Part shown: piece after piece, positions 8,701 to 48,300 of the stretch
Position numbering within the stretch: the stretch's first letter is position 1
How the letters are laid out: the number at the start of each line of letters is the position of its first letter
NCBI GenBank assembly: GCA_964035545.1
Contig: OZ037766.1
Span: 9,910,722-9,974,721 of the forward strand
Source of the DNA: Bugula neritina
Taxonomy: Eukaryota > Animalia > Bryozoa
Reading direction: 5' to 3'
Length of the DNA: 64,000 nt
Notes under the pieces: generated by a model
Seen by the model: the letters and a program-made list of their open reading frames with translations, nothing else
What the model was told of the DNA's origin: nothing
The model's database searches: none
Program-made: the position numbers and the translations under genes

Positions 8701-9746
8701 TCTAATGCTAAAAAGTTCCCAACTTCTACAACCACACAAATTTCATCATTAGAAAGACCAACACATCATGTTGGGTTTGGCATTGATCATCAATATATTA
8801 TGTTAGAGATTGCACAGGGTTATAATATTACACAACTAATACCTAATTTCACAAGCAGAACAGTAAGCCATAAGTTGACTAAAAGACAAACTGATATATG
8901 GGCTTGGCAATAGCCACTGCATCTAATAGGTTTATATAATATAATAGTAGAAGTTTTACAATACAACTAGCTGCTTGGATATTTCTTTAGTCAAATTACA
9001 TTATTTCTATTGTATTGCATAATTTATTCTGGGTCAAAATAGTCATTCACACCCATGGCTACAGCAAATGCCCGGCATGAAATTTACAACTTTACGAGGG
9101 CATATCAAAGAGCTCTTACACATTCTATTCTATTCAACAACCAAGAAAATTGAATAGATTATCACATTGCTTTTGTATATGTTGAGTGTACCTATTACTA
9201 TTCAGTGTATGAACTCAAGCCCTGCTAATGGGAGCATATTTCACAATGAGACGTGAGACTTTTTTGCACACAATCAAAATGAACTACATTATTTCCCTGC
9301 GGAACTAAGCTTGCTCAACTACAACTGCGCTTCCCACCTGTGCCATTAGGAACAGCTCTAACGTATGTGATGTACATTTTTGCATCGGCAAGTGTATGCT
9401 GATCTGTGCTGAGACCATTTGTCATATCATCATCCATTTTTTGCTTGATGGCACCATATGTTTCACTACTTAGTTGTAAGGGCTTTAAGATCTCCTCTAT
9501 CTACAATTAATTTAACAATTAATGAATACAAGCAAACCTGCTACAACTCTTTTATTTTATACAATGTCTGATAAAACTGTGAGGCAGCTTTCAGTTTGAT
9601 GACAGATAGTTTTTGCTATATGAAGTTTACAGATATACTGCATGTATGCATGTAGGTCAATTTAGAGTAAAATCAATAGCAGTACACAAAATAGTATGTA
9701 GTTACAAATAATACATTATTATAACATATAGCCTCTATTATGTATG

Positions 9747-15279: not shown

Positions 15280-18200
15280 TTACATAAGATACACTTTCTC
15301 TGCTTGACCCAATGCAAAGACACTGCTGGTACGAGGGCAAATTACTTTCCCATCATTTTCTAAGGCCATGTTCTCTAAAGCCTATAAATAATAAAACAAA
15401 ATATTATATCAAGCATTACTATGCACAGTCCTACAAAAACGCGTTAATAGGCCACTATAAAAAATTAATCACTATATCTCAATTGAAACAAAATATTATC
15501 TACTAATGTATATACAGTGATGAACACATAAACTCATGCAAGTTTATAGTCACTGTGAGAAACCCTGATGAAAAGGGGTTTTTGTTAAAGCAGGCTAAGG
15601 GGGCAATTATGACTGAATGCTCCTCCTAACATCACCTATGACCTTCATTAGGGTTCAAAACCAAGACTTCTTGTTTAATACAATCGAAAATCTAAAGTCT
15701 AACCCCTGCTGCTAAACACATATACTTGTGCTTTACTTTGAACGATTTAATGGTAACCTTGGTATTTATAAAGAAATCTATCCGCTGAGAATCTTATAAG
15801 GTGATAATACAAACCTTTGATCCGTAGACGTGTCCATTAGGTAACGCCAGTGGAGGATTATGTTCACTGATAATATCTCCAGATATTGAGCATACAAGTT
15901 TCGAGTGAGAGCAATGAGATATGGGAAACCCTTTAGCTAATTCATTCAGTTGTTTAGAACAAACAGGGCAATTGTCATTCTTGGTAGCACTTTTGTAGCA
16001 TTGTCTTATTTTCTATTATAAGGAAACTTTAAAAAATACCACCATTACAAAACATTTAGCTAGTTAAACTGGTACAAAAAAAGGCTTATATAAAAGACAC
16101 TTAGTAAAATAAAAAAACATGCAAATTAAAAGATTTTATGTATTTTTCTTTTCACAAAGAGTAACTGAAAACTTACTCTATTCTAATTATGTCGGAAGCT
16201 TCACATTTTACTATCAAGAATGAAAAAATTAGCATTATTAGCATTACATGGAATCATTATAGTATTGATGACCTTTTTTGGACTAAAATCTTTTGACAGG
16301 ATTCCCTCAATTTAAATGTTTTTTTTTACTTCTGTAAGAACATCTTGCTGGTTCAAGTTGTGTCAATAGATCATAAAGAATCTCCAAATATGAATTGAAA
16401 ATTGTTCTTTCAAATGTTTAATTCTAAAACTAAACAGACTGCAAATTTACATATATTCATTTTCTAGGCAATCCAAACTTCTACCATGTAAAACACAAAT
16501 AAAAGCATGTCTCTAAAAAGAAATTTTGACACTTTACTCATGGGTAAAGTCAAAAGGATACGGAGTTTTTAGTGCAGAGAGGCCACACTGAAGAGTGATG
16601 AGGAAAGCGCAATTCCCAGTGAGCTGGTGTAGGTTGAAGTTCTCCTTTCTAAAATCATCTATCAAGTCAGTCCATCGTTCTTCGGCAAATAATTCCTATA
16701 TAACAAAACATCAAGTACGTTCTGTTACTGAAAGATTTTCACTAAACTTGTCATTCCAAATATAAGCTTTTCTTGGACAATTTTTAAAAAAACTGATGAA
16801 TACAAGAAACCTATTTAGTTTGGCCACGGAAATGCATACTGAGATGCAGAAAACCACAAAACTGCTAATAGTCACAATGCTTGCTCTGTTTTAGTACACA
16901 TAATGCAGATTAATGCCTGAGGGAAAAAAACAAATTCAATACCATATAAGGAGAAACTTTGGTATCAGATGGAAATGCTAGCAGAGCCATCAGCATTCTC
17001 ACTCTAGGCATGTGTTCAGCTCCTAATTTTGAAAAATATGTTTTTGCCATTTTCACAGCTTCTAATCTCATATTTTGCCGAACACACTCAACAAAATCTT
17101 GCTGCCTCAACTTGATCTCTAAGCAGCTAAAACAGAACATATATTTTCTGAAGGCTACAATTATCTCATGATCATAGAACAGTATAGATGCAGGTGATCA
17201 CACATGGACTACAGCAAAAATTACATTTCCTTAGTGCTCCTAAGAACTTCTTACAGTTGAGGTGTTTTCTAAGAGTGTCTGAATACTTCTCAACTTCTTA
17301 TTTAAAATATTATATCTCTTCAGGTTTTGTCTATCAGGTCTTGATACATTGGTCACATTAGTTCAAGTGCAATACAAATGCTAACTTTGCTATATTACAG
17401 CACAATAATTTCACACATATGGAGAGAAAACTTATTGATTCTAATCAATAATGTTTCATAAAATGTAGAAACATTTTACATCTAGAGAAAAACGGCTAAA
17501 AAGTTATCAATAAGGGATCACTTAGCCTTACATAATTAGATCATAAAATATTTTTCTTCAATATATTATAATATTTATTATCCTGATGCACATATATGTT
17601 AATGCTAGATCTCCAACGTAATATAAACAAATTTGAGGTCAAAGTGGACCTTTAATTGTTACTTGCTGAGAAATGTATACTGTTTCTTCATGTATTAGGA
17701 CTGTAAAATTTTTATATTGGTGAATAGAACTTACCAAGTTTCAACCAACATACAGCAGATTCTTCGACTAACCTATGAGATTTTCGAAGCTTTGTTTTGT
17801 TTTCATGGCACCAGACTAAACACAGCTCAGTATGATGGTTGAGGAGAGAATCTTCTATAGCTTTAGAGTGGAGAAATATCTCAACATTGGTAAGATCCTG
17901 TGTAAAACACAATGCATAGCTGCATTAATATGTGCATAGTAATATACAATTATATAAAACCAAATAAGTAAAAAAAATTCTAGAAAATTCTCAAGAAATG
18001 GAACTACTGCGAGAAATCAGGTAGAATCGGCAAATACAAATAACAGTAGAAAATACAAACCTTGATGCCAGAATGTGTGGACAATAAATTTGCCGTATCA
18101 TAGTAGCCCAGTCTGAGGCAATACTCAACAAGCATGCGATCTAACCGCTTTTTCTTCCACAAATGTTCATCTGCAAATGATAGACTTTCGTACTCTTGAA

Positions 18201-20344
18201 GGTGCGATAATCGACGTTTACAAACCTTAGCTGCTTCCGCTTCATCTTCTATACTTTCACTAGCCTTTAAGTAAACAACTTTATTATCACCTTCTAAAGT
18301 TAACAACAAATTAAATGAATGTTGAAACAAAATTTTATTTGTTCTAATACATTACATAGCAGAGTGAATACAGAGTACTGTTTCAACTCTGCAAAACTGA
18401 ACGATCTATAACCTTAAATTTTTTCACATGACTAGTTTTTGAGCTAACTTCCAGCCATCTTATTACAACTTACTACAGATTAACCTGGTATCAGATGAAA
18501 AGCAAAAAACTACATTCATGGCTGAACATAAGACTTTTTTGACAAAGCAAAACAATATTTTAGTCGTATGGATTGCTATGTATGGATATAATGGAATAAT
18601 GAGTGGAAATATTTATTGGTAATGATAGCTGGTGGTAGTAGGAATCAGATAAAAATATAATATGACAAGTACAAAAGCAATTTTGAGCATAGATGACTTT
18701 CCGGTTTATCAGATTCGTATGTACTCTTTTGTTATTGATGCAATTGAAGAATTTCACCACGGTAGAATTAAAAGTATATTTCAGAAAGAAAGGATTAGGC
18801 TCAGAAGATAAATCTCTTTGAGTAACTACAAATTGAGCAACATATTTTCAGGTGTAGCACTCCACAGGAAACTGAAAATTTATTGAGCAGTAAATTCTCT
18901 TCACATTTAACTTTTATTTCAAAATATTTTTTTGTTGACAAAAATCTTGAATTAAAGTCTGTACGAGTTATATTATATTTAAAATTAAAAGATGATCTGA
19001 GTGAAATGAAAGTCATGCCAAAAGTCCCATTTTGCCACCTGTGCCAAGTGCTTATTATGGCATTGGGATACATTAATTAACAAATATTACAAACACATGA
19101 AGAATTATTTTAATAAATGCAGTGTTTTTCAAATCACATCACTTAAAATAGAAATCTGCCAACCTTTCTTTTCAAAACCTTCAACTTGGCAACCATTGAT
19201 GAAAGTAATTGTGATACAGTATATACTGAAGCATTTTCATCTAAAGTTGTTTGTATCAAATGCGCTGTAGAGTTGACATGGGAGATTTCCTTGTCAATAT
19301 TTTTCTGGGCATTTCTGAATTTTCTATTGAGTGACTCATAAGGTACCTACAAGAAATTAATAGAATTGAAAGTTATGTTCTTTGAACAATATGTATCCGC
19401 TTTAGGCCAAAAATAAAGACAAAATTATATATTTTTACTATATAGAATAGGAATAAAGTAAAAAAGCATTGAAATTACTAGAAAAAATTGTGTTAAATGA
19501 ATAGGGCACATATTGTAGTTGCTTAACATTTGGAAAATTATTATCACATAAATTGACATATTACTAAAAAATAACACCCACCCCATCCTGTCAAGATCTA
19601 CACATACAAAGAAACACTTGACTATTGAACAGAACAGCCCTAAGAGTTTGGTGAGAATTTTTTCTTCTAACTATTTCATTTTTCTAACCCCAAAAGTTTA
19701 ATAAAGCCATATAAATACTAACAAATACAAACTATAGTGAGAAAATGCAAATGGTGAGATTATCAGTAATCTGACAATTTTTGTAAAAATGACACAATTA
19801 CTTTGGCCCCTGAAGACAGTTTAACAATTACATTAATTAATCAACCGCTAGTGTATGTACAAACTACCTTCATGAGACACTTTCTGATGTTTTCCTTTGT
19901 AACTTATAAATATAATTAAACAATTTTCTTAATTATCATACCATGATTTGACAATTTAGTACTCTCGGCATATAACTAATTATATTACTAGCTTTAACTT
20001 TTAAAGTATATCAATTAGTTCTTAATAACACAGGTAGCTTGCCTGCCCAAAATTTATTATTTAATTTACATAAAGGCCTTGGTGTTATTAGGGCAATCCA
20101 AAAGCACTTAGTTGCATTACACAACGTTTTATAATGACCCAACTTTTTGCAATCATTTCTATAAATTTTCAGTTGGAATGTGAATCGAACATTTCTTGAG
20201 AACTTAACATCTACAACGCAGGTTTTTAAAATATTTCTTATCCTGCACAGGCTTTTGCAATTTTTATTAAAGCAAAGTCAGCTTGGCTCAGCTTCCAACA
20301 CAAACCTTCAGAGTAGAGTGCTCCAACACTTGAACATCAGCCAT
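15280..20344 (-). CDS. MAEA: E3 ubiquitin ligase MAEA (CTLH/GID complex subunit, Gid9/Fyv10), ~386 aa, 8 coding exons
   Basis: Exons 20344-20306, 19346-19164, 18264-18061, 17897-17773, 17126-16943, 16695-16562, 16004-15815, 15381-15280. [22 protein letters not shown], LisH ([20 protein letters not shown]), [39 protein letters not shown]. Confidence 0.95.
16005..16561 (-). other. U12-type GT-AG intron in MAEA
   Basis: Donor GTATCCTTTT at 16561-16552; branch-like TTCCTTATAA at 16025-16016 close to the AG; no pyrimidine tract; splicing restores KTP-QCY. Confidence 0.85.
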
Positions 20345-25158: not shown

Positions 25159-29627
<4,469 letters not shown>

Positions 29628-30901
29628 TCAAATTCAAAGTGCTCTCACCACATTTACATAAGGCTGTACTCTCCAAGTCTACCTTCTGAAGCATTCGAAG
29701 TTTTCTATTGTCTTTACAACACGAGGTAGTCACTACCTAATTGTAATATATGTGCTGTATGTAACATTTTTGTGTATAAACATTTTGCCATTGTTTTATG
29801 ATTTGTAACATTACATCTGGAAAAGACTGAATTATTATGCTATTGGTCAATTTCTTGTGTGGTTCAACATCATATTAGTTAATGGAAAAGGCAACTTCAT
29901 TTACTCTCTAATTTTCTATTACTCCTGTGTATATTTCACCACTAGCATCTATATTATACACTAATCATATTACGGACCTGATATAGTTTGCTATTTTGTT
30001 AATATTAAGTCCATGCAACTGTAACTGGCTTATTTGTAATTAGATAATAGTGAACAGTTTTCTGGTTATAAATATACACTTTTTATACATTATATTATCT
30101 ATCACTGGGAAATGTGTAAACACAACAATTAAAATCAACCTATTACATTCATTAAATTTGTGAATTAATATATTTCAATGTTGGACTGAAGGCAACATTT
30201 TTGTTCTATTCTAATGTTTGACCTAAATAAATTTATACCTCAAAAATTCTAGTATTTCAACTTAATAACATTGACTTGACGTTGCTTTTTAATAAACTGG
30301 ATCTAAAAAAGCCAGTTGTTAAAATAGATTGTAGTAATACTGCGAGAAATGTCATTGTAAAAATGTAATATTCAATATAAAGTACAAAATAGTGGGCACA
30401 AACATTTAGCACATATATTTGCCTCAAAATTGCTGTGAACTGATAGAAGCTAATTGACTCTCATTTAATCATTAGTAAAATTTTATAAAAACTTGATAAG
30501 AACAAATATAATAAAATCAAATTGCTGACCAATACACAAAGATAAACCTATTAATTATGAGTATTAAGATACCAGCTGTGCCTATAAAATTGTGTAGAAA
30601 CAATAGAATGAGGATATTATAAAAATTGAAAATAAATGAAATCATCACATAATTTTGCAACTTTCCTGTTGATACTTGGGCTAGATTGTGTCCAAACACA
30701 AATGGAAAAGTAGATATAAATATTACCTATAATACGTGATTTAACTACACCAGTGTTTTAAATGTTGCCTAAATGTTAGCTAACCACTACATTTGAAACC
30801 CAGCAGTGCTTTATCCTTTTTTATTGTATTGTATCTAACACTTGTAAAAGCAATCCTGAACCTATTTCTTTCAAACTGGAAAGACAATTTGAAACAGCTG
30901 T

Positions 30902-33900
30902 TCACATACATAAACACGGATCCTTTCTTCTCCGAACTCTGAGCATTCTCTTCAACCCAACTTCTGCAACAGACTCTAAAAGCTTGTGAATGCCTTCTCC
31001 AGTGTGGGCAGAGCATAGGAAGGCTGTCTTTTTCGAGGCCCTCATGTGTTCTGCTGCTTTATGTGCCTCTCTTGCTTCCACAAACCTCTCCCCTTCCTGT
31101 CTAATCTCGTACAACTTCTACAATATTTTTTCAATTATCGGCAAAAATTACGAGGTTTGATTCTCTTAAAAATAATATAAAACATGGATTAAATCAAACT
31201 GCAGTCATTAACAACATTATGAAAGCATAATATAACTTCAATTTACCTATTACTAAATACAGTAATGGCCTTCCCGAATACAAAAAAATCTTCCAAAATA
31301 AATATTTCAAGCAGTTGTCTAAAAAATTGTTCCTATCCTATTGACCATGAGTGAGAAAAAAGTTAAAATCTGAGCTCATTTCTCAAGTTAGCCCAAGAAG
31401 TAGGTGTAACAAAGGTTATACCTATCAATGCATCTGTGCTTGGAGAAAAAAAAGAAAGTTTTCCCTTATAAATAACAAGTTAATTCACTCATGTAAAAGT
31501 TTGAAAAACAGAATTTTCAACTATTTTAATCATAACAAAGGATTATCTACTCTTGAACTCTGTTGACCTACTGAAAGAGTTTTTTGTGACAATCACAACA
31601 GGTTTTAAAGAACTCAACTAGTATTACATACACCAGTTAGCATAAAGGAGGGTGCAGTCACATGTCTTCAAATATATGCAATATACACAGTGGGCTACTA
31701 ATATAATTGTAATGGAAAACTGCAGTTTCTTAAAACAATGCAAAGCGATTATTTTGATTACTATTCACAACTTTTCATATAAAGAAATAGTAGCTTGAGT
31801 ATAAGTATATTATATACCACAATTATATCTAAAGGTCAATAAAACAGTCTTATTTAAAAACAACTATTTTTATAAAATTCTGGCATCAAAACATTTCAAA
31901 GGGAGAAATTCAAAGATAGCCTGGGAACTATTTTTTTTCTTTTATCTATAGTTGAATTCTACAGAACTTTATATAAACTGAAAATCTGCATCTGCAGAAA
32001 ATGATAATATTATAATGAATAGTCCATTTGAAAGGGCAGCCCCTAATTTATTTTAAGATTACTTTATTTTCAAGCAGGAGCTCATGGTAGCATGCAAGAG
32101 CCCTCAACCTGTATTATTGATTATATATGAGCACCACGCGTCAACAATAATATAGAACAAAATACTAGCCTATGCTGACGTAGCAAACTTATGCAGACAC
32201 AACAACGACTATACAATATACGTTGGTGTACAATTGATATTTACCATTCAGTTCTGAGCTACTGGAAAGATAAATAAAAGTAAAAGCTTTAAAATACAGT
32301 ACTTGGCTATAAATGAGAAAATGAACCTAGAAAGAGGCTAATGGAAGTAGCTAACAATATAGTATTTAATAACAGCAGAGGCTGAGGAAGGGTTTGACGT
32401 ACTGTCAGCGTCCAGGAAATGTGCATAGTGAGTGGTGCAGCTGGACTTTATGTTAGTATCTTGTATTTATGACTGATACAAACTGAGGGATAGTATTGTA
32501 TCTATTGTGTAGATAGATAACAAAAATCAATGATCATGATATGTTGAACTTACCATCAATTAATCATTCTACAAGTTACACATTACCAAGTATGATCACC
32601 TTAAAATGCAAAAATAGAACTGTTCTATTTGGAGACATGTTGACCACAATGATATGCTGGCAAAATGAATGCTTCAAAGTATATTATACCAGGCGACATG
32701 TAATAATATAGTATAACTTACTTTCTGATCATTCATTGGATCAGTTTTATTTCCAACAAGTATGTACGGAACTTTTCGACAGTAGTGTTTAAATTCTGGA
32801 TGCCATTTTGCCAAGACGTTGTTTAGTGTAGTTTGACTGGTAACACTGAAGACCAACAGAGCAACATGAGAATCGGCATAAGATAAGGGGCGGAGTTTAT
32901 CATAACCATCTTGGCCAGCAGTGTCCCAGAAATTCACCGTCACCATTGTGTTGCCAAGTTGTATTTCTACAGAGTGGTTATCAAATATTGTGGGAACATA
33001 ACTTTCCAGTCTTGTTTTGTTAATGAAGTAATGAATTATACTAGTTTTTCCAGTTCCACCATCACCAACTAGAACACATTTTATTTTTGCATAATGGCGA
33101 ATTCCTCCAGTGACTGTGAAACTAGGTGTTCGCATTGTGGAAGTTCTGGAGGAAGGTTTGGCCTTTTGCTCTTCATCTTCTTTGTTCATATCATTAAGTA
33201 GAGCCTCATATATCTCATCATACACCTTTTGTTTTTCAGCCTTTTCTTTTTCCAATTCATTCAACACAGTCACAGTTCTCTTATACTTCTCATTACTTTC
33301 AAAAGATTGACTTTGCCTCTTTAACTCTTCTTGTAGCTAAAATTACAAATATTTCCCCTTTAACAGTAGCAGTTTGTAACTTACGGTACAAACAAAAGTG
33401 AGAAAAAACGTTTCAGATACAAAATACCCTTTCCAGAAGTCTCTTACATCTTGTTTTAAACATGAAATTGTATTCCTTGATGAGGGGATAAGCTTCTACC
33501 TTGGTTTCAAAAGGTGTCAATATATTTGGAGTGTGTTACACCTACCAGCCATTTTCCAGAAAAATAATGTGAAGAAGAGTTTCCACTGATATTTGATACA
33601 TAATAACCATAAAACTTTTGTGATTTTGGTATTCAATGAATCTTAAAAGAAATTGAATGTATTACATGAACTTGGTTATTCCCAACAACAGTTTTTATTA
33701 TTTTCTTAAATTTTCTGCTAGTTTAATTATGACAATATGACAAACTGTGGCCTATTTCATTGTAATATAGCTATTAGATAATAATTTGATTATATAGTAA
33801 TCAATATTAATAATATGTTGTAGAGCCAAAAAGTTCCCTTAGCAAAAATACAGAACTGTGTTACTTATGCTTTCAATTTATGCTCAGAGATTGATTTGCA

Positions 33901-35156
33901 GATACAATATACTTTTTTAAAAAACAATTGCACACTTATGGTAGAGTCTAAAAAAGCAACTCTTTGAAAACACTTTAACTGGTCTAGTAAACTATTACGG
34001 CAGTAGGGAAGTTTTAGTTTTGAAAGTAAAGGCACTCATGCAGAATGAATAATGAACAAATGGAAATAGTAGTTAGTAATAATGGTAATAACAAACTAAT
34101 AATAGTATTGTGGTATAAAAAAACTTTTGCATGAAAAAGTCATCAGTGCTAGTGAATCTTATTACCCGGACTGAATTTAATGTAATGAAGATAGCTGTAT
34201 CATGAGGTGGCGGATTTGAGAGCAGCGACTTGCAACAATGTTGGGACTTCTGGAGTACAACCAGAATGATATGACAATTCAAAATTTCTCCAACAATAAC
34301 CCATCCCCCCCCCCCCACCTAGTCTGAATTAGACGGCATAAGACTAATGCTATAACTTACATGGGTTTAGATACAACCTCACTGACATAGCCCCAAGAAT
34401 CATGGTATATTGAGGAGCAGATTGAATGTCTAACAAGATAATTATACTTTTGAACCATGAGAAAAATCCAGATATAATTTTCCCCATGGTAATCAACTAA
34501 GTACAATCATTTATAGACTAACAAGCAAGAAGCTAAATAATATGATAATTAAAACAACAATCACTGGAAGATATTTATTCATAAGCAATAATAGAATTCA
34601 CTAGTCTTAATGAACTGTAATGCCATAAAGGTAAAATTAGTACGAGTATGTAAGAAGTGTGAGATCATTCACGAGAGATGATAGATGATTTCCTGAATTG
34701 TAATAACTGGACTTCCTTTTAAATACTGCTACCCACCGTCTCCATTTCTGCCTGCATTGAAGCCACAATAATAGATTGCTGTTCCAGGCGTTCTTTAAGA
34801 GACATCAATCGCTCATCTTCAACAAAAGGGAAGCTGCTAGCATGGTGCTCTTGCCCCTCTTCAATAGAGACAACTTCAGGTGACATGGGCTTCTCCAATA
34901 ATTCTGCAAGCTCCACGTACCCTGCTTCTTTCATTGCTGTTATAAACTTTGCCAAACCATCACGGTTTTTTGTAGGAAGGACACCCAAAAATATTCGCAT
35001 CCTTTGAGCTCGAGTAGCACCAGACTGAATATTCTCACAATCTTCTTCGCTTAGAACATGCTCTTGAAAGAGAAAATCCGTCACATCTTCAGGATTCAGA
35101 TTCCGTACCAATTCAACATAATTTTCTCGCAGCTTCTGGCGGCTTTGATGGTCCAT
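30902..35156 (-). CDS. CARD - coiled coil - Rho-family GTPase - polybasic/CaaX fusion protein, ~416 aa, 3 coding exons
   Basis: Exons 35156-34737 (CARD-like LRENYVELVRNLNPEDVTDFLFQEHVLS..FITAMKEAGYVELAELL), 33336-32722 (coiled coil, then GDGGTGKT, YVPTIFDN, WDTAGQDGYDKLRPLSY, NKTD) and 31117-30902 (CSA, RVRRRKDPCLCM*). Both introns are phase 0 with GTGGGT/GTAAGT donors and AG acceptors. Confidence 0.82.
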
Positions 35157-37649
35157 GACTCACCCAAATTCTACCAATAATGAAAAATACTATTAGGCTT
35201 ATAAATCTAAAAGTTATAAAATCATTGCGTATTAAGCTATTACTAGACTTGTGTGTTAAATCACATCGAGTTGCTTATCTAAAGTTGGTCGGGATCAAAA
35301 GACCTTATAAAACTTGGCGTGTTCAACAGATAAATTTTAGAGAGTGCCAAATTTATTTTATAGCTTATTATGTTAAAGATTAATAAACATGAACCATGAA
35401 AATTTTTTGCTGACTACTAATGTGAGGCATGGGAAGATTCATTCCCTGTTTACTCTAATGGCTTTGTGCAAGTCATAAGTCATTGAAATATTCTTTGCCA
35501 TTGAATAAAGCCAGTAATTTGTTTAGCATGTCTAAACATGGTTCTTTCCCTTTCAAATGTGTATATTACCTTCTAAATTATAACTATATGGAGTACCTTG
35601 CAGTAAATGTTATGTCAAAACTAGTAGCTGATCATTACAATATTAGTTTAGGATATCGTAATGCAATAAATTATGAATGCTAGATAAACAGTTTCAACAC
35701 TATCAAAGTTGGATTAGGCTTTGTTAAAATATGCTATTCTAATTTTCTAATTCACAAGATCCTCATTGAGAATCAAGTTCTTCACCATTTGTGCCACCCT
35801 AAAATCTTCAGTCACTTTTTATTACTAATAAAATATAAATAAACACCCATTTCTAAATAGCTATATGGCGTCAATACCAAAAACTAAAACGCTGATTATT
35901 TCATAATATATGCATGTAACTACCCACTAATTTTTATGTAATGCTTTAAATAAACATCATATGTATTCGTGATGACCTGATGAGACACATGCAAGTCAAC
36001 TATAATTAACTTGTAAATATCCTACTAATAATTGACTTGGGTCAACCCAAGTCTTAACACAACTCTATTTAGAGCCTGGTCACTTTTTTAGTCTATGACT
36101 TGACTTGGTTAGTTATTGACCTAACCTGGCTTGCTATGGCTTCAACTTAGTATTTTACAGTCAATCTGACCTGGCTTTTTACTTAACCCATTTATGACAT
36201 TTCCCATCACTATGAACATTTTATATAATAGTAATTAATAACTGATAGGCTAACAAAAATCGTCTTGTTGTAATCTTAATTTATACTAACAAGTTATTAT
36301 TTTATATTTAATTTAACAATTAAAATTTCTTATTTTTACTTATTCAAATTTATGCCGAAACACAAAGCAAAAGTAGGCTAGTTAATTCTAGTTTATGATC
36401 TTTACAATGGTTACTGATACTCTGGTAGTTAATGACAATATTTATACTTTAATTTTATAGTTTGAGTTTATGTTATACTTTCATTAAAACTAACAACTTA
36501 TGTTAGCATATTCAAAGTATTAGTATCACTGTAAGTGTATCAGTATGATTAAATTTAAAAGCTGAAGAGAGTAACCCTGCCACACTTACTCTTGATAAAT
36601 GACACAATCACAGCCACTGACCAGTGATTGTGATTGGGCTTGTATAACTAAGTCTAACGTCTAAGAGTAACTGTAGTGTAAAGTGGATATCACCAACAGT
36701 AACACTAAATAGTAAATAGTAATGCTAATAGTAATAGTAAAACTAAGTGAATCATAAATGTAATAGTACTACTAGCTGACTAATAGTATGTGTAACTGAC
36801 TAACAGTAAGTGTTACTCAGTTACTCAAAGTTACTGTTAGTAGCTGGTTAGAACTAAGAATAAGACTAAGAGTAAGAGTAACTCAGTAAATTAGTTTTGC
36901 TGTACCTCTTACTAGTTTCACTGTTACTAATTGTGATATTAATAATACAGTAAAACTAATTCTAATAGTTATAGACTTAATCACCTATAGTAAATATAAT
37001 TATAATACTAGGTCTAATAGCAAACGCTCTTGGCTAATGCTAATTCAGTAACAACAATACTACCAATAAATATAATTATAATGAACAACTGTAGTCTCAG
37101 AAAATCAAGTGCTGTTTAGTGTTTAAGTTTAAGTTAGGTGTTAGTCAAACTTTCATCTATCGTATGTATAATCGGATTAAATGTACAAAAAACCATTATT
37201 TCATTTTTCTTATTAGAGTAGTCTAGATAACCTATTATTCTTTCTTTATGCTACACAGTATTATAGATTGTGACTGTTACTTCTTGACTGTTTGCAATGT
37301 TCTGGCTTTTGACTGTCTCGGGGAAGTCACAAAACGGATTTACCCGGAAATGCTGAAACTCTAATTGGGGCAAAATAAAAGTCGCTAGTTGAAGCCTAAA
37401 GTAAACGACCAATCCAACCAAGTTTGAACTTTTATTGGGGCTGCGTGTCTCGATATCACACTTCATTTATTATTTCAGTGTCAAATAAACCGCTGAAATG
37501 GGTTGTTAATATTTCGATTTAGACAAAAGGTTAGAGCTTAAATAAAAATCGTAACGGTGCGCCCACCTTCAATTTGCATTTTAGCTAGCTCTTCTTCATT
37601 ATAATTATATCATGTTCAGATTTTAAGGCTTCAACTTTTGCTGCTAATC

Positions 37650-37792
37650 GAATGGTTCTATAAGCAGCTTCGAGTTGGTGGTGAATGAGTGCGGTAGTTT
37701 AGAGTCTGACGTTTGGATTTATATCTTCAACTCGTAATTTCTAATTACTGCACTCATTCACCGCCAACTCGGAGCTGCTTATAAAACCATTC
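37650..37792. repeat. Inverted repeat with ~50-bp arms (MITE-like or hairpin)
   Basis: GAATGGTTCTATAAGCAGCTTCGAGTTGGTGGTGAATGAGTGCGGTAG at 37650 is reverse-complementary, with few mismatches, to 37745-37792. Confidence 0.85.
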
Positions 37793-38636
37793 CCGCTATC
37801 ACAGTTTCCACAGATCTAGGCTTTCAGCACGTGCAAGTAAGGTTTGCACCAGCGTGAGTTTGCGCATAGTCACTCACATTGAAATATAAATGGAGTTCTA
37901 ATACTAATAGTAATAGTAATTAGTATTACTATTACTATTAGTAATAGAATAATACTAATAGCGGTTAAAGTGGTCACTAACTCCTATTTTATTTGTAGCT
38001 CCTCTTTTGCTTTTAGTTTAGCCTTTGGCTTTTAGTTTTAGTTTTTGTTAATCTAAAAGTAAAAGTAAAACTATTTAATTTTAAATTTTCAAATCAGTAT
38101 GAGTATGACTATGAGATTGGGTATCCTTCTACACAAAACCTGAAAATGGTATTGGTAGTGGGCGTAGTGCCAGTGGTCAGTGGTAGTTCAACTCAAACAA
38201 TATTCAATTTTAATTTAGCATTGTGATTGTCGAAAGTTATGTGTATTCGTACATTAGCAGTATGAGTATCAGTCTATCACTATAGAGTTAGACAGTATAG
38301 TTAAACTTAAAGGCACCTAACAAACTCAGTCATCAGTATGTTATTGTTGATGTTAAACTTTAAAGACTAGAGAGCAAAAATATTCAAGACTAAATTTAGT
38401 CAGCCGAGGACCTAAGTTTTAGTTTACTCATTTCAGTTTGGGGGAGTTTCCCACTAAGAACCCCTGAAAGGTGAATGCATGGGAACTCGATATATGCATA
38501 TACATAATATATGCATATAATACATATATACTCTTTTTTTATATTAGATCATTCATTTATTTTATTTTCTTTTTCTTTAGTTATAGGTTTAAAGTAAAAT
38601 GTAAATACAAAAATTTAAGAACCAACACTCTAGTCT

Positions 38637-39310
38637 AAATTCCATCTCTCAACTCTCTAGTAGTTCGAGGATAAAAAGAGGGAAAATATACTTTTGAAGA
38701 TATTGCAGGCAAGAAAAACTTTGAGTGTTGTCTGGTATTAATTGGAGGTTGTGGAGCGACATATCCTTGATTTATTCAATCATTTTCTATACATTTGAAA
38801 AATAGTTTTTGCCGCAATTCTTTTCGACGGTCTTTCATGGATTTAATTCCTGTGGCTTCTCGCAGATTGCTGTAGCTTACTTGTGATTTTATAGAAAAAA
38901 TAAAATGCAATGCTTTATTTTGAACTTTTTCAATAATTTTAATATCTGTTTTTAAAACAGGATCCCAAACCTGACAACCATATTCCAACGTTGACCTCAA
39001 TAAACTGTAATATGCAACAAGCTTAGTTTTTGTGTCTCTAGATTTTAGTACTCTTTTTATCATTCCCAGGTTTTTATAGGCATTGGTTATTATTTTATTT
39101 ATATGATTGGTCCACTTCATATCATAACTTAATTCAATACCTAAATATGGATGTGATTCTACGTTACTTAATCTAGTATTATTTAAAGTATATATTATAT
39201 CAGAATTTTTTTCACCAACTGATATAACTGAGCATTTGGCTGCATTAAAACACATCTGCCAGGTATGGGACCATTTCTCCACGGTATTTAGATCTTGTTG
39301 TAGCTGATTT
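38637..39310 (-). mobile_element. 5'-truncated non-LTR retrotransposon (CR1/L2-group LINE), C-terminal part of ORF2
   Basis: LQQDLNTVEKWSHTWQMCFNAAKC..YLGIELSYDMKWTNHI..AYYSLLRSTLEYGCQVWDP..IEKVQ is the RT thumb and post-RT region typical of CR1/L2-group elements. The RT core is absent. Confidence 0.85.
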
Positions 39311-39519
39311 TTATTTTTTCTGACTCGAGTCAATTTTTATTTTAAATTAACTTTAAGTTCAAGTTGGAAATCTTTTGTCAAATTCCATGTCAACTTTGAG
39401 TCTCATAGTCATAGTTTATAATTATTAAGATGTAAAACTGAATGTAATTATTAGTATAAATATATGTGAATGTATTGCTCCTTTCAATGGTTTCGAGATG
39501 TTCAAAGTTAATCACTTAA

Positions 39520-42500
39520 AGGCGGTAAGCTTCCAGGTTATTTATTACATTTGAGCAAAAGTTTGCATGCTTTTCAACTGTTTTAGCAGCATTTTACCCA
39601 ATTTCTTATACGAAAACACTACAAAAATGTAAGTAAAAGTGGTCATATTAGGTGTCTTAGACTTGCCCAGACTTGCCCGCGAGCGTGCCCTCCGTGACGT
39701 GGGGATGGCAAAATAGCCCAATTGTAGCGTGAGTTTATATCGCGTAAAGTTATTAAGAAGCGGGTTTGTCACAGATTCTCGTTATTCGTAGCTCAAATCA
39801 CATGAATGTTACTCTTCGGGCGGCTACTAATAACTAACGTTAGCTACGCAACATCAAGAAAGGTAACTAATTTAACTGTTTTCAAATGGACTATTCCATT
39901 TCGCTAGTTTGTAACTTGCTGTAAATCACAAAATAATTATTTTCCCTATTTTAATTTCAATTATCATGTCGACCACACTACCAGAAAATTACTCTTAAAT
40001 ATGCAGTAAATGATGATTTTCAACCGTTTTGTGATGAATTATAGGTTAGTAGTTGTCTACGTAAAACCAAGTTTTGAAATTTGTAACTAAATCAGTGAAT
40101 CACAGTATCAGTATGAGTGTCACTAGTCTAACTCTATTTCTATGACATTGACTCTCACTCTAAGTCTATGACTATCGCCTATTGGTGAACTATTATTAAT
40201 AATATTCAATGGTTATATTTATTAATACTATTATTAGTCATAATGATAATCATATGACAGTATCAGTATGTTAATGTTACGGAGCAGGATCAGTTTCGAA
40301 ACTAATACTTTAACTTATACTTATAGTTATAATATTAGTTATAACTATAAGTATAACTATAACTATAAGTTATACCGATAGCTATATTAATATAAATATT
40401 TATATTCATAGTAATACTAATAGCAAATGTAATATTATTATGTTGATAGTTATACTTGTAAGTTATAATATAAAGCAAACGACACAAGTATTAATTTCAA
40501 TTTGAACTGCTGGTCTTGAAATAAAAAGTGAAATAAATATAAATAATAAAATATAAATTATAATAATTTAATTATACTAATACTTATACAGAAATATAAT
40601 TATAATAAATTTATAAAACTTAAACAACTTTTAATTTAAGGAACAACTTTAAATACAAACATAAAGATAATATTAAATAATTATAATCATAATGATCATA
40701 ACAATAAATATAATTATGATTCCAATAATTATCAATATATTATATAATATTTATTGCAAGTGAAAGTTAGTTATTCTCCGCCAGCTGCATGAATGTGACT
40801 GGTAAATTTTGTAACCTTTGGCAGTAATAACTTTGTAGCATAAATTAGACACATTTTTATGAAAATACATAATTTTAATGCTATAGCTGCTAGTAATTCT
40901 AATGGGTGTAATAATATTACTTTCACCAGCATTAATTTTTACTTTGTTCATCTCTTCATAAAGCATTTTCTAAATCCTTTTTTGAATAAATATACATATA
41001 ATGTGCTGAATAGATTACATATGTTGGGGTTCTTCCTATACTGCAGCTCAGCCTACACTCCCCCCCCCCCACAAATGTTCCTAAACTACTAGCTTCATCA
41101 GGATACAGATTGATGGAGCTGTATTGATAAAAACTTCTCTTTTTAGCAGTAGAGGCATCATGAAAAAAAAGGCAAGTATTTTACTCAATAAGAATTCGGT
41201 TTTTTACTTCTACAAATTTGATAGCCTACACGATTCTATTTAAATGGAAACTGGTCTGACATAATGTGTCTGCAATTTATTAGTTATAATATAGTAAATA
41301 CTATGCAGGCCTATAGATCAAATGGCTCAAAAAAAATTAAATAAAACATTACACAATGCTGTATTTATTAGCAATGTAATACTTAGCAACTAATTTCACA
41401 TTATTATTGTTTGCAAAGTTTCATACATCTACATATGTTTGTTCAATTCAGTGTTCTGAAGTAGAAGGTTCCAACAGCAGGGAAAAGCCTTGAACAAGAT
41501 ATTATGTTCTACATCTCCAACTCATTTTAACTTTGCTGGTCAGTTCATTGTGTATCTGGAGCATAGTTTTGTATTTTCAAGTAGTCCATCAGATAACTTT
41601 GTAGATAGTAAAGATTAAAATGCTTGTGCAATGATGTCCATAATGTTGAACCGATTTATTGAAACTAAAACTGTTCTTAATTATAACAAAACTTGACAAT
41701 CTTTACATAAAGAATAATGTCCTATAATCTATCTTCATTGTAAACAAAATTAGAAAGTTCCACACCAGCAAAATGTTAATCATCATCTGTAGGTGGAAGA
41801 CGCGTGCACTCAGTTATAAAGGCAAGCTGACGGTGGTTTTCTTTGCCTTCTATGAAGATTTGGAAAGAGCCAGAAAATTAATACTCTATAACTGCAAAAC
41901 CATGTTGTAGTGTCTTATGTTATTGATTGAATCATCTAAAAGAAAAATTGTTGTATCATTATAATTTTACTGTTAATGAATTAGCAAATCTACTTATCTT
42001 GGTAAATATATTCAAGAACAAATACTATAGTGTAACTCAGTTTTGGTTATGTGTATGCTCCTTAAGCGAATTTACAGCAGATATCAAACTATATATTAGA
42101 GACTGATATAGGAATTACATTTAAGCTAACCATGATGATGTAAATAGCTGTTGTATGTGACTTCGAGAACTCTGCTGGCCATGTCAGTTCAATTACACCA
42201 GGGTGATCTGTTACGAATCTCATGTCATTATTGAAATTCAGCTTTTTCAAGTGCCTCTTCACAACTCTGGCAGCATTCTGACTGCTCCTTAGCTTTCTGC
42301 ACCTGAACTTTCTTCTACTTGCACCATTCTTCTATTGGTGGAATGTTAGCCTATAACAAACAGGTGTACCAAAGCTAAAAAAAATATCTAATTCAATGCA
42401 CTAGGATATTATTCAACTCATTTAAATTTAATATATAGCAGTAAAACAATTACATAATTGTATTTATTTTATCAGCTTTACTTTACAAAGCTGAACCATA

Positions 42501-44307
42501 TAATTTAGTAACTTGTCATCATAATAAACTTTGTACAACATACAAATTGAAAACCTGATGTGATTGCTTTTTTAATAGAATATACATCAAAAACATGTTA
42601 CTTTGATAAGCGTGTTTATAATAAAAGTATTAAACCAGTTTAAAAAAAATTATTTTGTTATATAAGGGATCACAAAACTAAATCATTTTAGACCTGTAGC
42701 TCAATGTTCCTCAAGCAACGGGCTGCTATGACTAATTAATTTTCTATCATTGCATTTGACTGTTCTACTCATAGTGTATTGGCGAGTTAAAATTATTGGT
42801 AATTTAATGTATATTTTAGCTACCTCTGTACAATCAATGTCATAGTAATATCAATTAGGTTTTAAATTTCACTGAGTTTATAGTAAATTATTGCAATCGG
42901 TACATAACATTTGGCTAGTTCTCTAGTTCATTAAATAACCATACGAACTTAAATTTACAACATGAAAAAACACACAAAGCAAAATTAAAATAATCATATT
43001 ATGAACCAATGTAATTGATAAGCGATAATGCTGTTGTAAAACATAAATTATCAAATTGAAATAGTTATTATTACTATTAGTATTACTATCATTATAACAA
43101 CTATAACTATTATTAGTATTACTATTACTATTAGTATTAGCATTAGTAGTAAAAAATGAGTAGAGTTCAACATATACAATCTAGTTCACAGTTACTATAA
43201 AAGTAGAAGTAGAACTTTTAAAACTATTATCTCCATCATTATCAGAACTATGAGTAATACTAGTACAGTACTAGTAGTTGTACTAATAGTAATACTAGTT
43301 ATTAATACTAAAAGACAATAGTAATAGTATCACTATGAGTATGATACTTGGGCTGGCAGTGATTATCACTATCAGCATCATCATAGTGATAGTCAAAAGT
43401 TACAAGAATTAGAAGCCATATTCATATTGATATTCTCATTGAGTTATGCACAGTCATATTCATAGTAATAGTCAATCACTGATTGAGTTAATGTCATAGT
43501 GATACTCATACTCATAATTAATTTGCACGATACTCATACTCATAGTGATAGTAATACGTCACCGTGAATTTCAATTTAATAATAATTTTAATTTAATATT
43601 AAAGTGATATTAATTATTAATATTATCATTGAATCATTCATTGTTGCTAATATTATGTCTTACTCTTAGTCTAACAGCAGCTCTATAAAGAAGTTAAACA
43701 TAACTGATAACAAAACACATTTAAAAAATAATACTGTAACAATCAATATAATGCATATCAATATGAATATGCTAGCAACCTAATTTTCAGCCCACTTCAT
43801 TAACTTTCTGTGCAGTATTGTGAATTGTGATAAAATAAATTTATTAATGGTGACCTTGACATCTTCGTCCAAATGCCTTTCACGTCAAGCCCCGAACCAA
43901 TTTGTAAAAATTTTGGATTTTTTACTTTTGATTATTTTTTACGAAAAGAGCTTCAAAATAAATTTAAAAAAAAGTGAGCTGTTGTCCACATGAAAAGAAA
44001 TATATGAGTTAATTTTCTAAATTCAGGAAGTTACCAGAGGATCACAATATTTTTTTAAAAAAATCTTCATTTTCACGACAAGCTCTATATATTAATATAG
44101 AAAAATAGAAGACAACTCTTCTTTCAGATTTTTCATGTGCCACGGTCACGTCAATCTCAGTGCTATTAACACATATATTTTAATTCATTTTTTCTGGTAT
44201 ATTGAGTTGAGATTTTTTGTATATATTTTGTGAATGCAACTAAAAAAGTATGATCTTTTAATTAACAGTAATTGATTTTATCAAAATAACCTGGATGCCT
44301 ACGATGT
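39520..44307. mobile_element. Possible degenerate TTAA-flanked DNA transposon (Kolobok-like)
   Basis: TTAA|AGGCGGTAAGCTTCCAGGTTATTT versus the reverse complement of the right end TTAA|ACATCGTAGGCATCCAGGTTATTT (about 18/24 identical). The interior has only broken coding-like fragments and no transposase I can recognise. Confidence 0.3.
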
Positions 44308-45135
44308 TTAATGCTTTTAAATTTCGAAAGGCAATTTGAATAATGGGATTGCAAGTGCTCAAGCTCACTAGTACGAGTACTCAAACCAGCTGGTACCCAG
44401 TTTTAGTTATATTTGCTCATTACATCAAGCAATTCGGAGATCACCTAGCAGTTAGTATTACAGTAATTCAGTACTTGGCATGTTTTGCAAAGTCTCCTGT
44501 CTTTGTTCCGCTTTTAGACTTGAGCTGCGAAATGTTTCAACAAGTTCAACTACACTTTGCTTCATAATGGTTGAGTCTTTAGTCCACTTTCCGATTGATC
44601 ACTTCAATTGACCTATATCACTATATTAATATTGTTCATTAGTTTAGGTTCATGTTTACTGCAACTATAAAGTTTGTACTACTGTAGGGTTTAATACCCA
44701 GTATTAGAATATGTTCATCTGCGAGTATATACCTTAGCTGTTATCTACAGACTGTTTGAAAGTTGTATGTTCAAGCAATTTTGTTTTATAAGAAATGTTG
44801 TGAAAACATGTCTTGAATTAATTTGGGATTGCTCAAGTTTAAATGTTCAAACCACCTCTGTGATTAGGCTATGTGTTGCAGAAGTTACATGTAGCATGCA
44901 ATGAAAGTTAGCAATAATTACTATTAGATAATTACTGTTAGATACCACAGAATTTAGAGCCTACGGAAACTTGGGATTTGAAGTTTGAAATTTTTTGATT
45001 GCTCGCTGATGAAGTTTCGATAGGCTCTGAATATAATGATTACACATAATCTTTTGTAGAACTTAAATTCTTGCCAGAATTATCATACTAAGAAATACTT
45101 TGATTTTCTTTCACTGTTGGTGCTTAGAAATAATT

Positions 45136-45263
45136 ATGGCTAAACGAAAGTCCAAGGTAAGTAGTAAATGATGAAATAAAATCCATTTTTATCAAACTCG
45201 ACATTTATTATTGCATAATTTTTCCTTTTTTCAATATCAAATATACATACATGCATATATACA

Positions 45264-45357
<94 letters not shown>

Positions 45358-48300
45358 TTGAAGCAAATAATGTGTTTATATTTTATAAATATTTCTCATG
45401 TTGCACTGAAGTAATATGGTTACTCAATAGACCATATAAATTTAGTAAATTTACTACCTTGGACTATTTCTAGAATACTCACCACTATAACTTTTATAAA
45501 CTTCTGCATGTTCAAATGCAAAATGCATACCTCTAGAAAATAGCTGTGAAACTTTTATTTAATGCACTATTTTATTTCATATCTTAAACTTATAAATCAT
45601 GAGTTCATTTTTCAAAATGTTTAAATTAAGTGCTTAAAAATGTATTCCTGCACAAATACCCTAGAGCAGTTTGACCACAACCCCAGCTGTTTTGGCAAAA
45701 CACATTTAAGGGTTTTTTTGTTGACATAGTGGAGAATGTTTTTGGCAGTTGGGTAGACTTGAACTCCAGCTGCTTATACGCAATCTGATTGGCAGGATTT
45801 TACATGATCAGTTGATGTTTGTATCTGATTGGTCTAATAATGCATTTGCATTTGAAAATGTAGAGTTTTATAAAAATTATAATGGTGATATTTTAGAGTC
45901 GGTACACACCCTTTTTCGGTTGAATTTTATAGTCTGATCATGCTGTAGTCATCTACAACACTTCAGTGTATGGAGAAATTATTAGTATTACGAAATCTGT
46001 TTTGGCTTACTTTGCTATGCTAGTTTTCCGACTTAGTTGTTAAGTGATATAGTTTTAAATCAATGCATACTACTAAATACATTCTCATAGTCTGGTTACT
46101 TTGCGTGCTTCAGTTTACTTTAATGTAATTATTTAAAAAATTGTTCAACATGCACATTACAAATGCATTAGCCTGCAGTATAACCATAAATTATATGCTT
46201 GTGTACCCACTACTATTTTATTTTAAATCTGTAAAACAGCAGTTTTTTGCTCTGTCACATTCATCTGCATCGAGTGGTCCAATATTTAAACGCCTAGGAC
46301 TCTTTTGCATTAGCTGGCAAAGTTTCTTCTTGCTCAATTACCTTTAATGAAGTTAGACTACAAGAATAGCTGTAAGATGAATTCTGTTGCTTTACATTTG
46401 TTGAACATATTTTCTGTTCTTTTTTTTCCAGATGTTCTGTCAAAACCACTGTTTTTGTGCCTTTTGAACTATAAGTTTTGGTGCATTTGTATCCCAAGTG
46501 AAGGGTTGGGTTTGGATTTCGCTCAGTTGGCTGACCGTCCTTAAAATGTAGGGAGCAAACTCTGGATTGTTTTAGAGTCCATAAATTTCCTAATTCATCT
46601 TTCCGATTTATTAAAACACACCAATCGTGACTCTGTTGCTCATTTTTTGTGGCAACATATAAAGAGTAAAAAGATCTAATTGTCCAGGATTGCTCTTTCG
46701 AAACTTTTGAAGTTTGTATTCTCCATTATGGCAGTTTTTAACTGCGCAGATTCTCATGCCGATCTGTAAAATTCCAAGCAAAATATTCGGTATTGGATTA
46801 GATTCCTACCAGAACAAAGTTAAGAAATATACCACAGATCTTTTGGAATATAAGTTGTGAACACAGTTTTGTGCTAAAGCCAGTAATTAATGTAGCCAAT
46901 ATTGTTGACTTTGAGTAAGTAAAAGTTGAAAAATATGGTAAAAAGCCAAGCCTTGAAAAATGGCAAAAGTTCAAGAAACCAGATTATCAAAAGGTACAAC
47001 ACATATGGAGTACTATGTCTGAGAGTAATGACCATCAAAATGTTCTATTTTCTGTAGTACTGCATATGTTTGATATACGTAACAAACATTTTGTGTTATG
47101 TATGTACATCAAGCATACATATAAATTGAGGAGTTTTCTTATAGATGTTGAACCATTTAAAAAATCTGGTCATGTCAATCCTGGCAGAGAGCGCAGATAG
47201 TCCAGAGCATTTCTCTAAATTGGTCAGAACCATGTCCATAACAAGAAATCAAGTGTGGGAAATAGAAGCAGCAAAAGTGACGTAGAGTGACAGCCCTCTC
47301 TGGAGATTGCTCAGATATGGCGAGTTACTGCTTCTAATTTCTATCGTGTGAAGACACAAATGGAATCTCAAGTTAATGACGCACGTACTGACATGAGCAA
47401 ATTGGTAAGCTCATTAATAAGCCCAGGAGACATAAGCTCTGTACCTTCCATTCAGCACGGCCGCTCAATGGAAGCTAAAGCAAAACAGACATACTTGGAT
47501 TCAAACAGCCCTCATCGCAAGAAACTAACTCTTAGGGACTGTGGACCGTTTTTGTTCACAAAATTTGGGTTTTCAGGTGCTTCCCCTGATATGATAGTGA
47601 GCTGTGAGTGTCACGGGTAAGGCATTCTAGAAATTAAGTGTCTGGCTTTAGATGATTTCCCATCATTCAACACAGTTTCCTTTCTGAAAATTTTTTTTGA
47701 TGGCACAAAGTCTATTCTCAAATAGAAACACCAATATTATGGCCAAGTACAAGGTCAGCTTAAAATAACTAAAGCTGAATATTGTGACTTTTTTGTATTT
47801 ACTGTAAGAGGAAGTGTTACTCAACGCATAACACATGACTTGAGATTCACGGAAACCATGTTCATCAAACTGTCCAGATTTTCTATCGATTATCTGAGTC
47901 CAGCATTTTGGCTGCAGCATAATCAAAATGAGGAACCTTCGAAAAAGCAGACCTGTTTTTCAGAATTAAAAACAAAGCCTTTAGCTGCAGCAAATATGCA
48001 GTGAAAATAAAAATACTAAGAGTAGGTCTTTCTTTGACAATGATGTAAACATAAAGCCTTCATTTTGGACTGAGGTTTTGTGTAACTGCCACTGATTTAA
48101 TATAAATATATGCATATTTTGTTTATGTACATTAAATATTTCACTTGTTTTGAAATAATTTATTTTTATGTCAAGCCTCATTTTAATAAATTAATTGTCA
48201 ATACAAGACTAGGTCAAATATGATCTGAAGATAATATACAAATGTAAATGGTCTTGATTTATAATATATAGATCTCAACAAAGAGAGCCAAAAGGGAGCT

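Follow-up and report, generated by a model that had tools for sequence, protein, structure and literature searches.

Reviews of the Rho GTPases distinguish nine subfamilies and give RhoBTB and Miro as those with several domains (PMC7600811); the first-pass annotation of the DNA described here had likewise named these two as the multidomain exceptions. RhoBTB carries no CaaX box (PMC7600811). A GTPase and a CARD have been found in one chain in zebrafish Gbp4, where both the GTPase activity and the CARD are required for activation of caspase-1 (PMC4932187). Here, we describe a gene in a 64,000-nucleotide stretch of the Bugula neritina genome (assembly GCA_964035545.1, contig OZ037766.1, positions 9,910,722 to 9,974,721; the whole stretch is referred to as the window), which encodes an N-terminal CARD, a coiled coil, a Rho G-domain and a C-terminal CaaX box in a single protein. 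This gene, referred to as CARD-Rho, apparently represents a Rho family that carries a death fold and has so far not been described. Searches of the literature outside subscription journals by name, accession and concept found no description of this architecture, in line with the first-pass annotation, which knew of no described CARD-Rho-CaaX protein. What is new is the joining of Rho and CARD; the idea of a GTPase-CARD fusion is already known from Gbp4, AIG1-CARD and Roc-CARD proteins.

A three-exon gene encodes a CARD, a coiled coil and a Rho GTPase

The gene lies on the minus strand, and its features, in positions of the window, are as follows.

35157-35172, minus strand: short 5' untranslated region (UTR) and, with its AG at 35172-35171, the splice acceptor at which a leader encoded elsewhere (putative spliced leader) is attached to the mRNA
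34737-35156, minus strand: exon 1, 140 codons; CARD (aa 1-88), acidic and proline-containing linker (about aa 89-113), start of the coil (about aa 115-140)
33337-34736, minus strand: intron 1, 1400 nt, phase 0, GT-AG; seen in RNA contigs, position matching related loci
33085-33336, minus strand: 5' part of exon 2; helix or coiled coil (aa 141-190), then a variable Ser/Thr-rich linker
32722-33084, minus strand: 3' part of exon 2; Rho G-domain, G1 to G4 (Pfam, PDB, residue table)
33069-33046, minus strand: G1 (residue table)
33015-33013, minus strand: Arg replacing Phe28 (residue table)
32928-32914, minus strand: G3, DTAGQ (residue table)
32751-32740, minus strand: G4, NKTD (residue table)
31118-32721, minus strand: intron 2, 1604 nt, phase 0, GT-AG; seen in RNA contigs, position matching loci L034 and L037
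30902-31117, minus strand: exon 3, 71 codons and stop; Rho-insert region, G5, last helix, polybasic tail, CaaX
31015-31007, minus strand: G5, CSA (exon 3 translation)
30916-30905, minus strand: CaaX box CLCM, followed by the stop (exon 3 translation)
30618-30901, minus strand: 3' UTR (RNA contigs)

The three exons of 140, 205 and 71 codons add up to a protein of 416 amino acids. A check of the sequence showed that all three are open and joined in phase 0 and that both introns have GT donors and AG acceptors, so that the exon coordinates, phase 0 joins, AG acceptor and intact reading frames given in the first-pass annotation all hold. In four runs from four studies, assembled contigs joined exactly position 31117 to 32722 (1604 nt skipped) and 33336 to 34737 (1400 nt skipped), which are the two junctions that had been predicted. 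In three of the four runs all three exons were found on one contig of 3.8-4.0 kb, confirming that they belong to one gene and not to separate CARD and Rho genes. Contig depth was concentrated on the exons, with weaker cover over part of intron 2, and some contigs extend more than 2 kb past position 30618, possibly merging with the message of a convergent CtBP-like gene. The five strain differences listed for exon 3 are all synonymous. The gene is single-copy in the genome and its intron-containing form is present in a DNA-like run; therefore, a retrocopy does not explain the exon joints.

Taken together, the exact joints in four studies, the spanning contigs and the presence of the introns in the genome show that the fusion is real and expressed. 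That two separate genes, or a mis-assembly, were joined only on paper is highly improbable. The supporting runs consist of assembled contigs whose RNA nature is guessed and which show a divergence of a few percent from the assembly, as would be expected for another strain or a sibling species, but the same exact joints recur in four studies, the exon order and intron phases are identical in other genomes, and an intronless full-length equivalent (P0033, CAH1792752.1) exists in Owenia fusiformis. Searches with CARD-Rho were run exon by exon, and the Owenia protein was used as a natural full-length stand-in.

The CARD resembles those of caspase-activating proteins

Exon 1 matched the Pfam CARD family PF00619 with 57.7 bits (cut-off 23.9; E = 1.3e-15). 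An AlphaFold model of this exon, made with 15 relatives, showed a helical bundle with a predicted local distance difference test score (pLDDT) of 82-91 over residues 1-90, a disordered linker past the CARD and a further helix from residue 115. When this model was searched with Foldseek, the Apaf-1 CARD was matched with a root-mean-square deviation of 0.9-1.1 Å over 88 residues. The N-terminus, at first noted only as CARD-like, thus scores as a death fold. By profile, the nearest solved CARDs were those of RAIDD, caspase-9 and Apaf-1 (E = 1e-11 to 1e-8), with CARD9 and CARD11 far behind (E = 3e-6 and 2e-5, respectively). As RAIDD, caspase-9 and Apaf-1 are all of the caspase-activation class, the exon 1 CARD appears to belong to this class as well.

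The coil that follows was correctly read from the start as running from exon 1 into exon 2, and the overall CARD-coil-Rho-CaaX anatomy is supported. The coil is only about 75 aa long, its coiled-coil nature is predicted from the heptad pattern alone, and the first 30 of its exon 2 residues (aa 141-190) are nearly invariant among orthologues. Low-complexity linkers of about 25 aa on one side and about 30 aa on the other flank it.

The Rho domain has intact catalytic residues and lacks Phe28

Exon 2 was matched by the Ras family of Pfam (PF00071, E = 5e-34) and its best matches in the PDB were RhoD and RhoA (E about 1e-36), in support of the Rho G-domain that had been assigned to this exon. The Pfam and PDB matches and a residue table showed that motifs G1 to G5 are complete and that Rho proteins are the closest relatives. 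Exons 2 and 3 together contain a Rho insert: counted over both exons, the Asp of G4 is separated from the Cys of G5 by 40 residues, and the corresponding distance in Rac1 is about 38 residues. Residues G12, K16, T17, T35, D57, A59 and Q61, as well as G4 and G5, are retained. Since the catalytic residues, including G12, A59 and Q61, are in place, CARD-Rho is not a GTPase-dead Rho of the Rnd, RhoH or RhoBTB type.

Positions 28 and 29 are R-L, K-Q, S-Q and K-L in the four orthologues, and Phe28 and Pro29 are therefore replaced in all four. In Rac1, F28L and P29S have been shown to cause fast cycling, with exchange occurring without a guanine nucleotide exchange factor (GEF), and F28L loses a contact with the guanine (PMC9029563). 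The loss of Phe28 together with intact catalytic residues suggests that the orthologue clade represents a fast-cycling Rho that exchanges nucleotide independently of a GEF. This natural Rho clade without Phe28 could serve as a test case for fast-cycling biochemistry.

Exon 3 carries the G5 motif, the polybasic patch and the CLCM box that the first-pass annotation had placed on the final exon, and its polybasic tail has a net charge of +5 over 20 aa. All five complete members of the family end in a CaaX box (CLCM, CACM, CTCM, CALM and CSMS), with tail net charges of +4 to +7. A CaaX box with Met or Ser in the last position favours farnesylation, and CLCM would be a box of this farnesyl type, with prenylation predicted.

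The G-domain is only about 45-50% like RhoA, Rac or Cdc42. In a Rho tree, it formed a long branch and did not group with support with any reference in a set without vertebrate RhoD/F and Rnd. Pfam scans of the exons or of P0033 found no BTB domain, EF hands, second GTPase or membrane helix. Identity as a Roco protein was considered and rejected; the G-domain ends in a CaaX box and a stop, and the Pfam Roc match is the usual Ras cross-match.

The architecture is shared with other marine invertebrates

A search with exon 1 against 1.84 billion representatives found close relatives. CARD and Rho exons with 55-81% identity are present at three loci (L034, L037 and L072), and L034 and L037 have exon 3 as well, with an identity of 54-69%. 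Both introns are found at identical codons in the orthologue loci (intron 2 in L034 and L037). The CARD is kept at 55-70% identity with synonymous sites saturated, and among orthologues the number of changes per site is 0.12-0.30 for nonsynonymous (pN) and 0.75-0.98 for synonymous (pS) sites, indicating that all three parts of the gene are under purifying selection.

A second and more diverged group consists of several CARD-Rho paralogues in one set of metagenome samples, in which Phe28 is kept. These paralogues (L039, L042, L043, L044, L048, L050, L052 and L059) were found alongside the orthologue L037/L045, and two of them, L042 and L043, appear frameshifted. They probably represent a lineage-specific expansion, the alternative being the presence of several species in one sample.

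The Owenia protein has 399 aa and comprises a CARD, a coil, a Rho domain and a CSMS terminus in one exon. The coding region of its gene (L031:10001-11200) is intronless and lies head-to-head with an EML gene. Phe28 is retained in this protein and Glu replaces the G3 Asp. P0033 was the best outside match to a profile built without Owenia (104 bits, with the next match at 86) and also the top, if weak, outside match to the coil (E = 0.018). For P0033, AlphaFold run on the single sequence gave a model of low quality (pLDDT 49), which was set aside. The Rho tree separates Owenia from the bryozoan-type genes, although an approximately unbiased test does not reject one clade (p = 0.275), and the CARD tree does not resolve its placement. 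In our judgement the Owenia and bryozoan-type genes probably share one origin. The Owenia gene is possibly a retrocopy that replaced its parent, or else the product of an independent fusion.

A search for relatives with the same architecture, proposed at the outset, has thus yielded orthologues, diverged paralogues and a full-length Owenia protein, and by sequence the CARD-Rho design is conserved in several other marine invertebrates. Word- and length-limited searches found no full-length relative other than that of Owenia, and no CARD-Rho cluster was found in the ESM Atlas. As the searches were limited and most relatives exist as single-exon open reading frames (ORFs) only, the range of the family is underestimated.

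Other combinations of a CARD were also observed. A CARD and a Bcl-2 domain, an unusual pairing, occur in one ORF in five proteins from public assemblies (P0058, P0164, P0108, P0078 and P0119); a comparison of coils did not support the idea that these share the coil of CARD-Rho. Other fusions of a nucleoside triphosphatase (NTPase) and a CARD have the architectures ankyrin-Roc-COR-2xCARD, AIG1-CARD-ankyrin and CARD-NTPase (P0045, P0094, P0144 and P0056).

Possible functions of CARD-Rho

Few CARD genes could be detected in the B. neritina genome, their number being a lower bound. Among them are a CARD caspase with the His and Cys catalytic motifs (L068, contig C6, 14.146-14.156 Mb), an ankyrin-CARD gene (L066, contig C5, 11.476-11.479 Mb) and a gene with an N-terminal CARD and an otherwise unclassified product (L067, contig C2, 14.044 Mb). 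In a survey of lophotrochozoans, Apaf-1 was not found in molluscs, annelids or a brachiopod, and neither were PIDD or ASC (PMC11463336); this caspase survey has no mention of Rho or of bryozoans (PMC11463336). With Apaf-1 and PIDD missing from the molluscs, annelids and brachiopod surveyed (PMC11463336), what clusters their CARD caspases is unsettled.

We consider it most likely, with a probability of roughly 0.4, that CARD-Rho is bound to a membrane and serves as a CARD platform, gated by nucleotide, for the clustering of an initiator caspase. This reading is based on the caspase-type CARD, the conserved CaaX box and tail, the loss of Phe28, the presence of a CARD caspase and the lack of an NB-ARC match in the genome. 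Farnesylation of the CaaX box, together with the polybasic tail, would place the G-domain on a membrane, where it would bind and hydrolyze GTP and, being without Phe28, could load GTP without a GEF. Control could come from GTPase-activating proteins, from expression or from modification of the switch loops. The conserved coil would dimerise or oligomerise and relay the state of the switch to the CARD, and the CARDs, once clustered, would draw in a partner with a CARD, the simplest candidate being this genome's CARD initiator caspase or a CRADD-type adaptor. The outcome would be cell death or immune signalling in a lineage seemingly without Apaf-1.

The first-pass annotation had proposed a CARD switch gated by nucleotide or by modification in immunity or cell death. 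This proposal is plausible, and it gains context from the loss of Phe28, the CARD caspase, the failure to find an Apaf-1-type NB-ARC and the precedent of zebrafish Gbp4. CARD-Rho may be the missing activator of death caspases in animals that lost Apaf-1. A broader version, in which an old lophotrochozoan family uses its prenylated Rho switch to nucleate an initiator caspase directly, replacing the lost apoptosome and/or sensing, in one chain, bacterial effectors that target Rho, is put forward more tentatively. Were this broader version true, CARD-Rho would give the first example of a death platform whose gate is a small GTPase of the Ras superfamily within the same chain.

Several considerations weigh against a platform of this kind. 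With about 25 and about 30 aa of low-complexity linker beside the coil, coupling between the switch and the CARD is not evident from the anatomy. Since Owenia and the paralogues keep Phe28, fast cycling is not a family-wide property. A death trigger that is constitutively loaded with GTP would need tight inhibition. Moreover, fast-evolving receptors do not resemble a gene like this one, which is single-copy, strongly conserved and apparently well expressed, and its conservation would also fit constitutive signalling or an inhibitory role. The exon-wise search that found no NB-ARC match in the genome is not proof of absence, and CRADD has been proposed as a caspase activator in the lophotrochozoan survey (PMC11463336).

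Among the alternatives, the least unlikely, though still doubtful, is an integrated decoy or guardee, in which the Rho domain would serve as bait to effectors by which bacteria activate or modify Rho proteins, its modification setting the CARD free for defence or death. Such a decoy would be one form of the platform model, with a pathogen enzyme as the trigger. Upwards of 30 virulence factors act on Rho GTPases, and animals detect such attacks by way of Pyrin, NOD1, NLRP3 and IMD (PMC8084149). Rho proteins, common targets of effectors, are under guard in mammals and flies (PMC8084149, PMC11781737). Integrated decoys are known in animals (PMC11781737). The retention of Y32, T35, N39, Q61 and the CaaX box while surface positions diverge, the long branches of the Rho domains and the several diverged paralogues in one metagenome sample set, some apparently frameshifted, would all fit such a role. 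However, the target residues are retained in every working Rho and do not discriminate, a decoy should resemble the RhoA, Rac or Cdc42 of its host more closely than the 45-50% or so seen here, and strong purifying selection acts on the orthologue clade, which is single-copy. If true, CARD-Rho would be a natural integrated Rho decoy in animals.

CARD-only inhibitors such as ARC or COP offer a model for a role of the opposite sign. A membrane-tethered CARD could restrain an initiator caspase or adaptor as long as a GTP-loaded Rho domain is intact, and the caspase would be set free once GTP, the prenyl anchor or the protein itself was lost. The predicted constitutive GTP loading, the steady expression in all four runs and the strong conservation would suit such a brake, other animals have CARDs related to this one joined to Bcl-2 domains, and guarded components are often negative regulators (PMC11781737). 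We nevertheless rate this as less probable than a decoy; against it, the conserved coil suggests oligomerisation, which is usually activating for CARD partners. Slightly less probable again is an atypical Rho of the cytoskeleton or membrane traffic, similar to RhoD/F or RhoU/V, whose CARD and coil would serve only for targeting or self-assembly and which would have no output in death or immunity. Here, a G-domain that is complete together with its effector loop and Rho insert, RhoD as the best match in the PDB and the fact that fast-cycling Rho proteins drive filopodia have to be set against a CARD of the caspase-recruiting type, kept despite saturation at synonymous sites, and against a genome in which few CARD partners were found, one of them the caspase. 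We regard as improbable a scaffold similar to CARD9 or CARMA proteins that would nucleate Bcl10-MALT1 and NF-kB with the Rho domain in place of the MAGUK part. A coil does follow the CARD and CARD-CC/Bcl10 complexes exist in annelids and molluscs (10.1101/046789), but the profile scores of CARD9 and CARD11 are far lower than those of RAIDD, caspase-9 and Apaf-1, the coil is short for this class, and no Bcl10-like gene was found among the CARD matches of the genome, which are a lower bound and included no search specific to Bcl10.

A putative spliced leader

Contigs of two runs from two studies (X3 and X6) start with a 22-letter leader joined at the AG acceptor at 35172, giving a leader of at least 22 nt. 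The leader is absent from the 64-kb window. Seven exact matches were found in the genome. Six of them are clustered on contig C3 at 31.46, 31.51 and 31.63 Mb (L024-L029), and after each of these come a GT donor and a tail of about 125 nt that the six have in common. The seventh copy, on contig C2 at 10.83 Mb (L023), has no GT donor. An ordinary upstream UTR exon was ruled out, as the leader is absent from the window and multicopy elsewhere. A leader that is encoded elsewhere in several copies, precedes a GT donor and is joined at an AG acceptor shows the pattern of spliced-leader trans-splicing, which suggests that the six C3 copies are candidate spliced-leader RNA genes, the leader having been seen on one mRNA. 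No canonical Sm site was found by pattern at the leader copies, and Rfam gave no match for them. No report of spliced-leader trans-splicing in bryozoans was found in the literature covered, and the leader suggests its occurrence in this phylum.

Neighbouring genes and other features of the window and assembly

The genes on either side of CARD-Rho, both on the plus strand, are the following.

27041-29612, plus strand: CtBP-like gene, convergent with CARD-Rho; also downstream (tail-to-tail) in L034
49829-54202, plus strand: APEX1-like endonuclease and further conserved exons, head-to-head with CARD-Rho; Pfam match at 50325-50606

The head-to-head arrangement with the APEX1-like gene is also found in L034, L035 and L037. 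About 14.7 kb separate CARD-Rho from this neighbour here (35172-49829), compared with 1-2 kb in L034 and L037. Within this gap are a fragment resembling the reverse transcriptase of a long interspersed nuclear element at 38776-39333, what may be the remnant of a transposon at 47348-47620 and, at 49380-49884, a tandem repeat. A GC-rich Gypsy-type retrotransposon with gag, an intact pol of 1405 aa and a third ORF lies at 57309-63883. At 8053-8735 and 18004-18330 are hexokinase exons and another exon, which had no Pfam match and which we take to resemble MAEA/CTLH-complex sequence. Elsewhere in the assembly, small contigs (C101, C42, C66, C110, C230 and others) have matches to the Ras family that run on through numerous TAA and TAG stops; ciliate contamination is the probable explanation.

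Comparison with known systems

With the Rho family (RhoD/RhoF, RhoA, Rac1 and Cdc42), CARD-Rho has in common the G1 to G5 motifs, switches I and II, the Rho insert, the polybasic tail and the CaaX box. Classical single-domain Rho, Rac and Cdc42 proteins have about 190-210 aa and Phe28, whereas CARD-Rho has 224 aa of CARD and coil at its N-terminus, replaces Phe28 and Pro29, ends in a CaaX box of predicted farnesyl type and does not group with a named subfamily in the incomplete reference set used. The likeness to the fast-cycling RhoD/F and RhoU/V consists of intact G12 and Q61 and of GEF-independent exchange, which is predicted here. RhoBTB and Miro also contain a Rho-like G-domain within a larger protein; however, their additional parts are C-terminal (BTB in the former; EF hands, a second GTPase and a transmembrane anchor in the latter), whereas CARD-Rho has an N-terminal death fold and keeps the CaaX box.

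Among CARD proteins, the closest structures and profiles are those of Apaf-1/CED-4 and RAIDD (CRADD), and Apaf-1 is itself a nucleotide-gated CARD platform. By comparison, CARD-Rho has no NB-ARC, WD40 or death domain, and its switch would be a lipid-anchored small GTPase; its P-loop domain is, by the Pfam and PDB matches, a Rho GTPase and neither the NB-ARC nor the NACHT of Apaf-1 and NLR platforms. The CARD-CC proteins (CARD9 and CARMA1-3) likewise have a coiled coil after the CARD, but the CARD of CARD-Rho does not score as that type, the coil is much shorter and Rho stands in place of MAGUK. Fusions of Roc-COR or AIG1/GIMAP with death folds or caspases (DAPK; P0045, P0094 and P0144) also combine a P-loop GTPase with a cell-death module in invertebrates; unlike CARD-Rho, they use other GTPase classes, have COR, leucine-rich repeat or ankyrin parts and lack a CaaX box. 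The best functional precedent is zebrafish Gbp4, with its GTPase and CARD in one chain, although Gbp4 is a dynamin-like large GTPase with a C-terminal CARD and needs ASC, which was not found in lophotrochozoans (PMC11463336).

CARD-Rho therefore adds to RhoBTB and Miro a further Rho architecture that is conserved and expressed and carries a death fold. Its 416-aa protein has textbook switch residues that can be mutated, making the question of caspase clustering directly testable in cell culture. Vertebrates tie the status of Rho to caspases indirectly, through Pyrin, NOD1 and NLRP3; in CARD-Rho, this link seems to be hard-wired in one chain.

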